This document shows positions 18,925 to 28,077 of a stretch of 64,000 nt of DNA, one piece after another; the stretch's first letter is position 1; each line of letters opens with the position of its first letter. The stretch covers positions 124,001 through 188,000 of the forward strand of contig NIVC01000597.1 of the NCBI GenBank assembly GCA_002269645.1, read 5' to 3'. The stretch comes from Macrostomum lignano. Lineage: Eukaryota. The notes below the pieces were generated by a model. It searched no databases. It saw nothing but the letters and a program-made list of their open reading frames with translations, and was not told the DNA's origin. Both the position numbers and the translations under genes were made by a program.

Positions 18925-19180
18925 CACCCTCCTAACAATTAGCAACCATAAACACCCTCCTAACAATTAGCAACCATAAACACCCTCCTAACAATTAGCA
19001 ACCATAAACACCCTCCTAACAATTAGCAACCATAAACACCCTCCTAACAATTAGCAACCATAAACACCCTCCTAACAATTAGCAACCATAAACACCCTCC
19101 TAACAATTAGCAACCATAAACACCCTCCTACCAATTAGCAACCATAAACACCCTCCTAACAATTAGCAACCATAAACACC
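18925..19180. repeat. 28-bp minisatellite (aattagcaaccataaacaccctcctaac)n overlapping the TLR stop codon
   Basis: Tandem repetition; last TLR codons GGT GTT TAT GGT TGC TAA are part of the unit. Confidence 0.95.
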
Positions 19181-25100: not shown

Positions 25101-28077
25101 GCGGGTTGTTGACAGACAGGCACTGAGACAGGCAGACAGACAGACAGACAGACAGACAGACAGACAGACAGACAGACAGACAGACAGACAGACAGACAGA
25201 CAGACAGACAGACAGACAGACAGACAGACAGACAGACAGACAGACAGACAGACAGACAGACAGACAGACAGACAGACAGACAGACAGACAGACAGACAGA
25301 CAGACAGACAGACAGACAGACAGACAGACAGACAGACAGACAGACACTAAGACAGACAGAAGGACACTAAGACAGACAGACAGATAGATACACAGACAGA
25401 CAAACAAACAGACAGACAGACAGACAGACGGACAGACAGACAGACAGACAGACAGACAGACAGACAGACAGACAGACAGACACTAAGACAGACAGACAGA
25501 CAGACAGACAGACACTAAGACAGACAGAAGGACACTAAGACAGACAGACAGATAGATACACAGACAGACAAACAGACAGACAGACAGACAAACAGACAGA
25601 CAGACAGACAGACAGACAGACAGACGGACGGACAGACAGACAGACAGACAGACAGACAGACAGACAGACAGACAGACAGACAGACAGACAGACAGACAGA
25701 CAGACAGACAGACAGACAGACAGACAGACAGACAGACAGACAGACAGACAGACAGACAGACAGACAGACAGACAGACAGACAGACAGACAGACAGACAGA
25801 CAGACAGATCGGCACCTGTCCGGCAGAGGCTGTCTCTGCATTCCCAGCAGACACAGGAAGTCCTCATGCCGGGCGTCGCTGATGTGGCCCAGCCGGGTGC
25901 TCCGCCCCTCGCTGTCCTCCTCGTAGAAGAGGCAGCTGGAGTTCCGCCTGTTCAGCCAGTCGGGATAAGCGAAGCCGCCAGTTCCGTCGTCTCCCCCGCG
26001 CTCCTCCTCGGCGAGCACCCGGGCGAAGACGTGCCGACAGTCACAGACCGGCGTGCGTCGCTGGCCGTTGGCGACGAGGCGGGCGCGGGCGCTTCTGCTC
26101 CGGCGCGGTTGCATGCGCAGACTGCGATAGTCGAAGTGTCTCAGCTGATTGTCGGACAAGTCGATCAGCTGAAGGCCGGTGAGGTTGAGCAGGCAGCCGT
26201 GCTCAAGCTGGCTGATGTTGTTGCCGCTGAGCAGCACTTTGCTCAGCAGTTCAGTCTGCGGCAGCAGCAAGCTGCAGTTCAACTCTTCTAAAAGATTTCG
26301 CTGCAGACTGAGCGACCTGAGCTGCGTCAGAGAACTGCAGCTGGTGCTCGACGCTGTCAAGAGGTTGTCGTCGAGGTCCAGCGACATCAGGCTGGCAGTC
26401 AGCTGGCGACTGCCGAGGGCCAGAGGGTCCAGCCGGCTGATGCGGTTGTTTTGCAGGTGGAGGACGTTCAATGACACCTGGAGCAAGTGATTGATGGTTC
26501 TATTAATTCTTGTACAGGCTTGCGTAGCTTTCCTGTACTGATATTTCATTCTTGTACGGGCCTATGTAGCTTTCTAGTACATGTTTTTTTCCTGTACAGG
26601 CTGTGTAGCTTTCTAGTACATGTTTTTTTATTTTCCTGTACAGGCTGTGTAGCTTTCTGGTACATGGTTTCTTAACTTTCTTGTACACAATGTGCAGCAT
26701 TCTGGTACATAAGTTGTTCACCTGATGCCACGGCTGCAGCGCTCCAATGGCTTCAATTCTGTTGTTGGACAAGTCCAACACCCTTAACGACAGCCAGGCA
26801 GCCCGGAACCAGTAGCACAGGTGCGGCCAGCCCGCCTCACAGGTGTCCGAGCTGTACAGACTGACTATCCGGTTGCTGCTCAAGTTCAGGCTGCTCAGCC
26901 GGTCCAGCAATCCGGCCGGCCCCGCAGGCACGCGGGTGAGCCGGTTGCCGGACAGGTCCAAGCTGGAAATTGCTGACGACCGCGGCAGTGGCTTGTCGGC
27001 ATCGGCGCTCTTGACAAGCCAGCGGTGTCCGAGGAGCAGGGAGAACCGGACAGGTGGCCGCAGAGTGGCATTGTCCATCTGGGAGTAGAGGCTGGCCAGG
27101 CTGTCCACGCGGCCGTGGGCAGCGAGGCGGATCAGACGGTGCAGCGCCAGGCGGGTGAGGCCGCCAGTCCAGGCCAGAGACGAGTTCGAGCCGACGCAGG
27201 CGATCGCTGGGTCCGGCGCGGTCAGACAGGCGGTCAGAGCGGCCAGGGCGGCTGCGGCCGAGTCGGCCAAGCTGTCGTCAGTCAGGCCGCTGTCCACCAG
27301 CTCCAGCGCTACGCCGCCGCCACCGTCGCCGGGCAAAGACGACAGCCAGGCGGAGCTGTCGGCTGCGATAGCGGCTGCCACAGTTGGAGATTGGCGGATT
27401 CGAACTCCGGATAGCCGGGTGCACCGGGACAGAGCGCGGCGTATCTCGTCGAAATGGCAACAGCGGCCACCTGTCCAGGAGACGTTCGCGAGGCTCAACT
27501 CGAGAAGTCGGCAGTCACCTGTGGCGCCTACTTCAACATCGTCGGGATAGTCAATAGTGGTGAGGTAGCCGCCGACCCCAGGCGACTCCGGGGGTCCCAG
27601 CTGCGCTACCGACATCACCGACGTCTGTCGAGTTCGACAAGAAGTCAACGTCGAGTTGCTGCAGCGGCTGGCTGCAATCAGACAGCCGGTGGCGGCGACT
27701 TGCAGAGGCGGAGCGCCGGTCCTGCCAGCCGGCCGGGCCCGGGTGACAGCGTCCAGGTGTACCATGGCGCAGTTTAGACATCCGCTGCAGTCCAGCGTCA
27801 GGCTGTTGACCACTCGGTCAGGCAGCTGGGAGCACGGCACCCGGTCCGTAGATCTTGCGTCATCATTATTTAGCGGCCAGATTCGGCAGACATAGTCGAA
27901 CTCCGTATCTGTTGTGAGCTGTTCGCACAGGCAGGCATGGGAGGCTGTGTAGTTTGGCAGCAATTCGAAGTACTGCTCCGAGCTGGCCGAGTTCTGGGTT
28001 GCTGCGACGGCCAGCAGAGAAAGCAGCGAAGGCAGAAATTGCCGAATTAACAAAACAGCTTCTTGGCAGAACTTCAT
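19163..28077 (-). CDS. Toll-like receptor, multiple-cysteine-cluster (protostome-type) ectodomain, TM, two degenerate TIR-like domains; ~1317 aa; exons 28077-26722, 26477-25816, 25098-24709, 24043-23582, 20671-20157, 19731-19163
   Basis: All introns are GT-AG with matching phases (0,2,2,2,1). Signal peptide [26 protein letters not shown]. LRRs include [56 protein letters not shown]. Internal LRRCT/LRRNT (CDCRH...FLC...[31 protein letters not shown]); juxtamembrane LRRCT ([12 protein letters not shown]...DSMTC); [24 protein letters not shown] box1 FDVFLWS, box2-like [10 protein letters not shown], beta[11 protein letters not shown]; second unit ADIFVLCW...[12 protein letters not shown]. Confidence 0.85.
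19830..20110. repeat. ~28-bp minisatellite (gacagacattggaggacagacaatagaa)n in TLR last intron
   Basis: Tandem repetition. Confidence 0.9.
20697..21234. repeat. (ATCT)n microsatellite
   Basis: Near-perfect tetranucleotide run. Confidence 0.98.
21235..22326. repeat. Four head-to-tail 273-bp units (starts 21235, 21508, 21781, 22054) embedded in (ATCT)n; possible non-autonomous rolling-circle element
   Basis: Units identical by eye; sub-terminal hairpin AAAGAGC-tcgcttcgctc-GCTCTTT; junction ctatctactatctat. Confidence 0.9.
22327..22825. repeat. (ATCT)n followed by (CTGT)n microsatellites
   Basis: Tetranucleotide runs. Confidence 0.95.
23178..23412. mobile_element. hAT-type MITE (235 bp)
   Basis: Imperfect long TIRs starting CAGGGACTACTAAAACTAG...GGCCA(A/G)ATCATGCAGAAA at both ends; 8-bp TSD GTCAAGGT at 23170-23177 and 23413-23420. 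Confidence 0.92.
24066..24600. repeat. (CTAAA)n pentanucleotide microsatellite
   Basis: Tandem repetition in TLR intron 3. Confidence 0.97.
25110..25810. repeat. (GACA)n microsatellite with cactaa variants
   Basis: Fills TLR intron 2. Confidence 0.97.

Follow-up and report, generated by a model that had tools for sequence, protein, structure and literature searches.

The minus strand of a 64,000-nt stretch of the genome of the flatworm Macrostomum lignano (contig NIVC01000597.1 of assembly GCA_002269645.1, positions 124,001-188,000 of the forward strand; hereafter the window, in whose coordinates all positions are given) carries, at 28077-19163, a six-exon gene in which leucine-rich repeats (LRRs), a transmembrane (TM) helix, and a TIR-like cytosolic domain stand in a single open reading frame (ORF). 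We consider it likely that this is a transcribed gene for a type I membrane protein and that this protein, though highly divergent, is homologous to the protostome-type (multiple-cysteine-cluster) Tolls. It is probably a new member of the P-type Toll family, a very divergent one, from a phylum presumed to be without that family.

From the N terminus, the protein would comprise a signal peptide, a lineage-specific N-terminal region, eight LRRs, an LRRCT-LRRNT cluster, and about three further LRRs. Next would come an LRRCT close to the membrane, a single TM helix, a degenerate TIR contained wholly in exon 5, and an extension of 188 residues.

Gene structure, public records, and a second genomic copy

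Between 28077 and 19163, the minus strand consists of six GC-rich blocks (62-68% GC), the exons, parted by AT-richer introns filled with repeats. GT-AG borders were found at all five introns, and the exon phases agree. If exon 4 is taken to start at 24043 and exon 6 at 19728, the spliced product is 1316 amino acids long; use of the NAGNAG acceptor at 19731, which adjoins the CAGCAG acceptor at 19728, gives a product of 1317 amino acids. The exons and three of the introns are as follows.

28077-26722, minus strand: exon 1 (amino acids 1-452), with its ATG at 28077 and a GT donor at 26721; signal peptide (28077-27997), ~340 Cys-rich residues at the N terminus without a Pfam match, and the first canonical LRRs (motifs at residues 370, 394, and 431)
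26477-25816, minus strand: exon 2 (amino acids 453-673); LRRs at residues 455-554 and the first LRRCT-type cysteine cluster (26051-25851)
25099-25815, minus strand: intron 2; nearly all a (GACA)n array (25111-25808)
25098-24709, minus strand: exon 3 (amino acids 673-803); internal LRRNT-type cluster (25094-25005) and a short second LRR block
24044-24708, minus strand: intron 3; mainly an (ACTAA)n pentanucleotide array (24065-24598)
24043-23582, minus strand: exon 4 (amino acids 803-957); the last LRR, then the membrane-proximal LRRCT (NPWRCSC...C845...C888; 24024-23788) and, in the 3' part, the TM helix (23748-23686) followed by an Arg-rich juxtamembrane stretch
20672-23581, minus strand: intron 4; 2910 nt, nearly all repeats, namely (TATC)n (20696-21234), a 273-bp satellite in 4.1 copies (21219-22326), (CTAT)n (22312-22610), and (CTGT)n (22630-22827)
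20671-20157, minus strand: exon 5 (amino acids 957-1129); a divergent TIR-like domain, with the box 1 motif FDVFLWS from the second codon of the exon
19728-19163, minus strand: exon 6 (amino acids 1129-1316 and the TAA stop); C-terminal extension of 188 residues

The copies of the 273-bp satellite, which lies between the (TATC)n and (CTAT)n arrays of intron 4, are 99% identical; the satellite gives rise to repeated ORFs of 57-78 amino acids on both strands, which are not genes. At the other end of the locus, a 28-bp tandem repeat at 19000-19180 (6.5 copies, 98% identity) starts within the last codons of the gene, and its first unit includes the C-terminal residues (...GVYGC) and the TAA stop.

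The open frame has the properties of coding sequence throughout. At ~65% GC, the chance of a 1316-codon open frame is ~e^-33, as estimated from base composition, and in each of the six exons the GC content of the third codon position exceeds that of the first, which exceeds that of the second (GC3>GC1>GC2). A codon model trained on exons 1-4 favored the proposed frame by +69.5 bits in exon 5 and by +45.8 bits in exon 6; the other two sense-strand frames scored negative, and the best antisense frames reached ~+25 bits. We also considered an exon-4 acceptor at 24070, within a (TTTAG)n array, which would yield 1326 amino acids, and rejected it because with the acceptor at 24043 the LRRs fall back into their 24-residue register and the product is the GenBank protein. 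The latter acceptor, found by comparison with an older public model, places the LRR register correctly just before NPWRCSC. Left unspliced, intron 4 would hit a TAA directly after the exon-4 donor.

An exact-sequence look-up revealed that the 1316-residue product is, letter for letter, GenBank PAA80115.1 (UniRef100_A0A267G202), encoded by the M. lignano gene BOX15_Mlig018589g1 and named "TIR domain-containing protein" in UniRef. The gene is annotated over 8915 nt, which correspond exactly to window positions 19163-28077, and positions 9163-38077 of the window are identical to contig NIVC01000597.1 of assembly GCA_002269645.1 (Mlig_3_7); the host is therefore M. lignano. For the GenBank annotation of Mlig_3_7, transcripts had been assembled both de novo and with guidance from the genome, and TransDecoder had been used to call the ORFs (PMC5730564). 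Assembled transcripts thus underlie the five junctions, those between exons 4 and 5 and between exons 5 and 6 included, and the RNA support of these junctions is indirect, by way of this transcript-derived annotation. In an older gene model of 645 amino acids (P0001), the exon 4-5 junction is likewise ...RSVENFDVFLW; this model is frame-shifted, its TIR region being read in wrong frames, and was the only match of a word-index search with the cytosolic region. UniRef calls the older fragment models (P0001 and a 485-residue fragment of the same 90% cluster) "LRRCT domain-containing protein."

An earlier note on this stretch, made from its letters alone, had described a hidden six-exon Toll-like receptor (TLR) of ~1317 amino acids, with satellite-filled introns, in what looked like a flatworm genome, possibly a Macrostomum-like one. 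The six minus-strand exons and their consistent phases are borne out by the GT-AG borders and by the identity to PAA80115.1, the introns do consist of micro- and minisatellites, and the identity to NIVC01000597.1 bears out the proposed host. The length is that obtained with the acceptor at 19731, the GenBank protein having 1316 residues. The gene is not hidden: its transcript-derived coding sequence (CDS) has been annotated and public in GenBank since 2017, under a UniRef name that mentions the TIR domain.

A second genomic copy (PAA80135.1, BOX15_Mlig001880g1, 1262 amino acids) lies on contig NIVC01000596.1 and belongs to the same 90% cluster, in keeping with the report of duplicated blocks in the DV1 line (PMC5730564). 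It retains all six exons and the five intron borders that were checked; between the copies, identity is 98.5-99.3% in the exons, 93.5% in intron 1, and 85-88% in intron 5. Substitutions between the copies were counted by the Nei-Gojobori method. Exons 1-5 together differ by 20 synonymous and 19 non-synonymous substitutions, with a ratio of non-synonymous to synonymous rates (dN/dS) of 0.33 and a synonymous excess at a binomial p of 7e-4. The ectodomain, with 17 synonymous and 13 non-synonymous substitutions (dN/dS 0.26; synonymous excess, p = 3e-4), is under purifying selection, as exon 6 appears to be, with four synonymous substitutions and no non-synonymous one. Exon 5 differs by two synonymous and five non-synonymous substitutions, an omega of about 0.9 that is not significant at n = 7. 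The gene overall is under constraint; for the TIR-like domain itself, the data cannot tell. As the CDS of a transcript-based annotation with a dN/dS of 0.33, it is best taken as an expressed, selected gene and not as a pseudogene.

In the second copy, a 1-nt deletion in a G run of exon 6, at the site matching window position 19341, shortens the annotated product to 1262 amino acids. The one substitution downstream of the deletion still falls at the third codon position of the undeleted frame; the deletion may therefore be recent or an assembly error.

Ectodomain architecture and probable relationship to arthropod Tolls

Hydropathy predicts a type I topology. The signal peptide gives a Kyte-Doolittle peak of 1.92 at residues 8-26, and a single TM helix at residues 902-922 (peak of 1.95 at residues 902-920, followed by an Arg-rich stretch) separates the ectodomain from the cytosolic domain. 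No Pfam family matched residues 1-340. Eight canonical LRRs occupy residues 370-554, and about three more lie at residues 720-778; across the two blocks, eleven LxxLxLxxNxL motifs keep a 24-residue register. The extracellular LRRs are recognized by Pfam LRR_8 (E = 8.6e-25) and LRR_4 (E = 3.5e-15).

The LRR array is split by an internal pair of cysteine clusters. The first LRRCT-type cluster is formed by C597, C599, C634, and C661, and the internal LRRNT-type cluster spans the 30 residues from 675 to 704, so that residues 597-704 read CxC-x34-C-x26-C followed by C-x5-C-x3-C-x3-C-x-C-x12-C. A second LRRCT (NPWRCSC...C845...C888) occupies residues 810-888. The protein thus has more than one LRRCT and an internal LRRCT-LRRNT cluster that divides the LRRs, the arrangement that marks multiple-cysteine-cluster TLRs.

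The best and longest full-length matches were two TIR-bearing arthropod-type Tolls, which were also the sole matches to carry a Pfam TIR domain. The top match, a Toll of the copepod Caligus rogercresseyi (EP00096_P014670; P0002), is 27% identical over 488 amino acids, in a colinear alignment that takes in the last LRRs and the LRRCT as well as the C-x3-C-x3-C-x-CY..W......C motif with the LRRs behind it. The other matches, the majority of the list, were chaoptin- and artichoke-type LRR proteins, which covered only 10-19% of the query.

We compared the protein with the arthropod P-type (multiple-cysteine-cluster) Tolls, that is, the Toll-6/7/8 (Tollo) and 18-wheeler group, of which Caligus EP00096_P014670 and Agrilus planipennis Tollo (P0043) are examples. 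It shares with them the signal peptide, the long LRR array, the internal LRRCT-LRRNT cluster, the short second LRR block, the NPW-C-C LRRCT, the single TM helix, the start of the TIR (here TIR-like) domain ~35 residues past the membrane, and a C-terminal extension; its TIR-like domain aligns colinearly with their TIRs. Unlike them, it has an N-terminal region of 340 residues without a detectable LRR or family and only ~11 clear LRRs, and its LRRNT is without the cysteine-rich CCDFDACDC part. The Macrostomum TIR-like domain, in contrast to their TIRs, falls below Pfam thresholds, with box 2 lost and box 3 altered, and the tail behind it has no relatives. Canonical 24-residue LRRs are also found in LRR-only "TLR-like" proteins and in proteins of the chaoptin and artichoke type; what sets the Macrostomum protein apart from these is its colinear internal cysteine cluster, behind which come a TM helix and a TIR-like domain.

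The cytosolic region and competing explanations

Box 1, FDVFLWS, opens exon 5, 35 residues past the TM helix; it aligns with the family profile fDAfvsYS and corresponds to the consensus (F/Y)D(A/V)F(I/V)SY. Among 24,736 Pfam families, TIR_2 was the best for exon 5, yet it remained below threshold (E = 0.11-0.17), and the PADLOC and NCBIfam family libraries gave no match. For a targeted comparison, a Toll-clade hidden Markov model (HMM) was made from 23 complete TIR domains, which match Tollo-type Tolls. The TIRs of the top two ectodomain matches had served as the profile for collecting these domains, and the one named hit among the 23 is a Tollo. This HMM scored exon 5 at 6.9 bits (E = 3.6e-4 at Z = 1), a score reached by none of 5000 shuffles, in an alignment that spans box 1, beta-B (ICVHC versus KLCLH), and beta-C (12 residues versus SRRTIIVLSxNF). 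Comparison of exon 5 with the Toll-clade TIRs by hhalign gave P = 6.4e-4 over 146 colinear columns, which none of 240 shuffles reached, and added beta-D (FFYICLSGG versus LIVILLGDV), EPGLKR versus DPDLR, and tryptophans near box 3. Exon 5 is identical to the family at 16 of the 42 columns conserved at >=80%. The UniRef name "TIR domain-containing protein" presumably mirrors a match to the PROSITE TIR profile, as such names usually do. Given the scores of the targeted HMM and of hhalign together with the UniRef name, we think it likely that exon 5 encodes a TIR-fold domain homologous to the TIRs of Tolls.

Exon 6 (188 amino acids) matched no Pfam, PADLOC, or NCBIfam family, and its AlphaFold model, with a predicted local distance difference test (pLDDT) score of 38, was unusable. 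By eye, the TIR-like motif order is repeated in exon 6, after the first TIR-like domain. The Toll-clade TIR HMM gave 1.8 bits, a score reached by 13 of 5000 shuffles and thus a hint of likeness, but the hhalign score was reached by 33 of 240. A tandem duplication of exons 5 and 6 was considered and is unsupported (BLASTP of exon 5 against exon 6, E = 0.13). TLRs with twin TIRs have been described in bivalves; the likeness of the Macrostomum protein to them lies in the exon-6 motif order seen by eye and is without overall statistical support. This conserved domain without a family may be a cryptic second TIR.

If the protein works as Tolls do, contact with a ligand or homophilic contact at the LRR ectodomain would lead to dimerization, which would bring the cytosolic TIRs together and allow TIR adaptors to be recruited. 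Since box 2 is not conserved and constraint on exon 5 appears relaxed, signaling may be non-canonical or weak, with the ectodomain carrying part of the function. Planarians are reported to have about 20 Smed-TIR proteins, with MyD88- and SARM-like ones in Schmidtea mediterranea (PMC7958881); TIR-only proteins of this type are possible partners of the Macrostomum receptor. They share with it the flatworm setting and a cytosolic module of the TIR type. According to the same review, no planarian TIR protein is joined to LRRs (PMC7958881), whereas in M. lignano the LRRs, the TM helix, and the TIR-like domain are found in one transcript-derived ORF.

Several results weigh against assigning the protein to the Tolls. 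In the ectodomain, the Pfam LRRCT and LRRNT models gave no match, and the cysteine-cluster segment alone matched the Caligus Toll only at E = 0.097 in BLASTP. In exon 5, TIR_2 reached 12.8-13.5 bits against a gathering score of 28, and PF01582 (TIR) was not reported. Box 2 (RDxxPG, the BB loop) reads CDGGPP, departing from the consensus, as does box 3, where FW reads DW, the Trp being kept and the Phe lost. Searches of PDB sequences with exons 5 and 6 yielded no TIR relative, and a phmmer search with exon 5 against 1.84 billion representatives returned three low-complexity artefacts and no TIR. The single-sequence AlphaFold model of exon 5 has alternating strands and helices at low confidence (pLDDT 52.6; predicted template modeling score, pTM, 0.53), and Foldseek with this model against the PDB gave generic Rossmann- and flavodoxin-like folds, with no TIR in the top 50. 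The nominal omega of about 0.9 in exon 5 belongs with these points. As modeled, the order of strands and helices would fit a flavodoxin-like alpha/beta domain, and at a pLDDT of 52.6 the Foldseek outcome is uninformative rather than negative.

The earlier note had read the locus as a complete but very divergent TLR with an ectodomain of the Toll/18-wheeler multiple-cysteine-cluster type, an FDVFL box 1 at an exon start, and a degenerate TIR, and had suggested a check with HMMER. Its ectodomain layout agrees with the LRRs, the cysteine clusters, and NPWRCSC found here and with TIR-bearing Tolls being the best full-length matches; FDVFLW does begin at the second codon of exon 5, and the TIR is degenerate to the point of falling below Pfam thresholds. 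As to a complete TLR, the LRRs, the TM helix, and the multiple-cysteine-cluster layout stand; the TIR is the weak point, a putative fold (pLDDT 52.6 and the Foldseek result) whose support is statistical, from the Toll-clade HMM and hhalign, together with the database name. The HMMER check gave a divided answer, with TIR_2 on top but below threshold, PF01582 unreported, and the LRRCT model unmatched on one side and the match to the targeted Toll-clade HMM on the other.

A different reading of the same kinship is that the protein derives from a Toll and now serves as a receptor in adhesion or recognition through a functional, conserved ectodomain, with a vestigial TIR, a decaying and non-signaling remnant, and with any cytosolic function lying in the conserved exon-6 tail. 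We consider this unlikely, though it deserves real weight. It is favored by the counts in the ectodomain (dN/dS 0.26) and exon 6 (four synonymous, no non-synonymous) as set against those in exon 5 (two synonymous, five non-synonymous), by the degeneration of boxes 2 and 3, and by the failure of the Pfam TIR models. Yet exon 5 has just seven substitutions, with which an omega of 0.3 is compatible (P of about 0.15 by a binomial estimate), and the exon is open, has the codon usage typical of the gene, and keeps 16 of the 42 conserved TIR columns in order.

Much less probable, in our judgment, is an LRR-only "TLR-like" transmembrane protein, kin to chaoptin, artichoke, and Slit-type proteins, whose cytosolic alpha/beta domain would resemble a TIR by chance. 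Chaoptin- and artichoke-type proteins do make up most of the full-length matches, and neither the Pfam threshold, the PDB sequence search, nor the 1.84 billion representatives provided a TIR relative, Foldseek giving generic alpha/beta folds only. However, TIR-bearing Tolls supply the two matches that are longest and score best, and their alignment stays colinear across the internal cysteine cluster; no Pfam family ranks above TIR_2, the clade HMM and hhalign scores lie above those of all shuffles, the exon-5 domain stands at the position of the TIR in TLRs, and the UniRef pipeline names a TIR domain protein. We give hardly any credence to a pseudogene or to an annotation artefact that fused distinct transcription units on either side of intron 4, with its 2.9 kb of repeats. 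The TBONE pipeline is known to merge transcripts at times over repetitive gaps of up to 10 kb (PMC5730564), a TAA lies right after the exon-4 donor, and exon 6 of the second copy has its 1-nt deletion. Against such a merger stand the 1316-codon open frame, whose junctions are canonical and agree in phase, a codon usage in exons 5 and 6 like that of exons 1-4, the retention of all exons and splice sites in the second copy, the overall synonymous excess, and the older model P0001, which independently has the same exon 4-5 junction. A divergent P-type Toll remains our preferred explanation.

Neighboring features and implications of a probable flatworm Toll

Other features of the window are listed below.

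7521-11528, plus strand: uninterrupted ORF of 1335 amino acids with gag-like (PNMA), aspartyl protease, reverse transcriptase, RNase H, and integrase domains; apparently the intact polyprotein of a Ty3/gypsy-type long terminal repeat retrotransposon
29083-29813: 57-bp (19-codon) tandem repeat of 12.8 copies with 97% identity, ~1 kb upstream of the start codon of the Toll-like gene, giving rise to long repetitive ORFs on both strands
36457-36978, minus strand: ORF matching the structure of exocyst complex component 4 (8ay2_A, E = 3e-12, amino acids 7-171)
38456-43544, minus strand: ORFs with coding-like GC3 and no Pfam match, through which the exocyst complex component 4-like gene probably continues
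54632-55285, minus strand: ORF with weak matches to alpha/beta-hydrolases (BD-FAE, E = 7e-8; Abhydrolase_3, E = 1e-6), probably an exon of an esterase or lipase-like gene
60396-60821 and 62003-62368, minus strand: exon-sized ORFs matching Pfam LIN37 (E = 2.5e-14 and 4.4e-9, respectively)

The two LIN37 matches substantiate the LIN37 gene that the earlier note had mentioned. Matches of the 36457-36978 ORF to TAL effectors were discarded, as they have 0 matched stretches and look like compositional artefacts.

Flatworms have been described as lacking TLRs, as the earlier note said of complete ones. A metazoan TLR survey lists the M. lignano genome with 0 TLRs, defined as proteins that combine LRR, TM, and TIR, and proposes an early loss in Platyhelminthes (PMC8609888); a second metazoan-wide survey found no TLRs in the phylum (PMC10279657), and a review of planarian immunity credits flatworms with TIR-only proteins and no TLRs (PMC7958881). 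For M. lignano, the first of these surveys used the 2015 assembly, with a TIR HMM as its first filter (PMC8609888). The older models of the gene, whose origin in the 2015 assembly is suggested by their UniProt accession series, are the frame-shifted P0001 of 645 amino acids and LRR-only pieces of 485 amino acids. We attribute the survey's miss of the gene to these truncated or frame-shifted models and to the TIR HMM filter, the Pfam TIR HMMs being below cut-off here. Our literature searches for a Toll or TLR reported in Macrostomum found no such report.

That a single transcript-derived ORF combines LRRs and a TM helix with a TIR-like domain, behind an ectodomain of the Toll multi-cysteine-cluster type, bears directly on the early loss of TLRs that has been inferred (PMC8609888). 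The claim has its limits, in that the sequence was already public and tagged as TIR and that the TIR fold and signaling are inferred. M. lignano is a transgenic model (PMC5730564), and the role of a flatworm Toll in immunity, development, or regeneration is therefore directly testable. We regard the chances as about even that a functional receptor descended from the ancestral P-type Toll of spiralians persists in M. lignano, one that would signal through an extremely derived TIR, possibly aided by the exon-6 domain. If this is true, TLRs were not lost at the base of the Platyhelminthes but later, for example in triclads and neodermatans.

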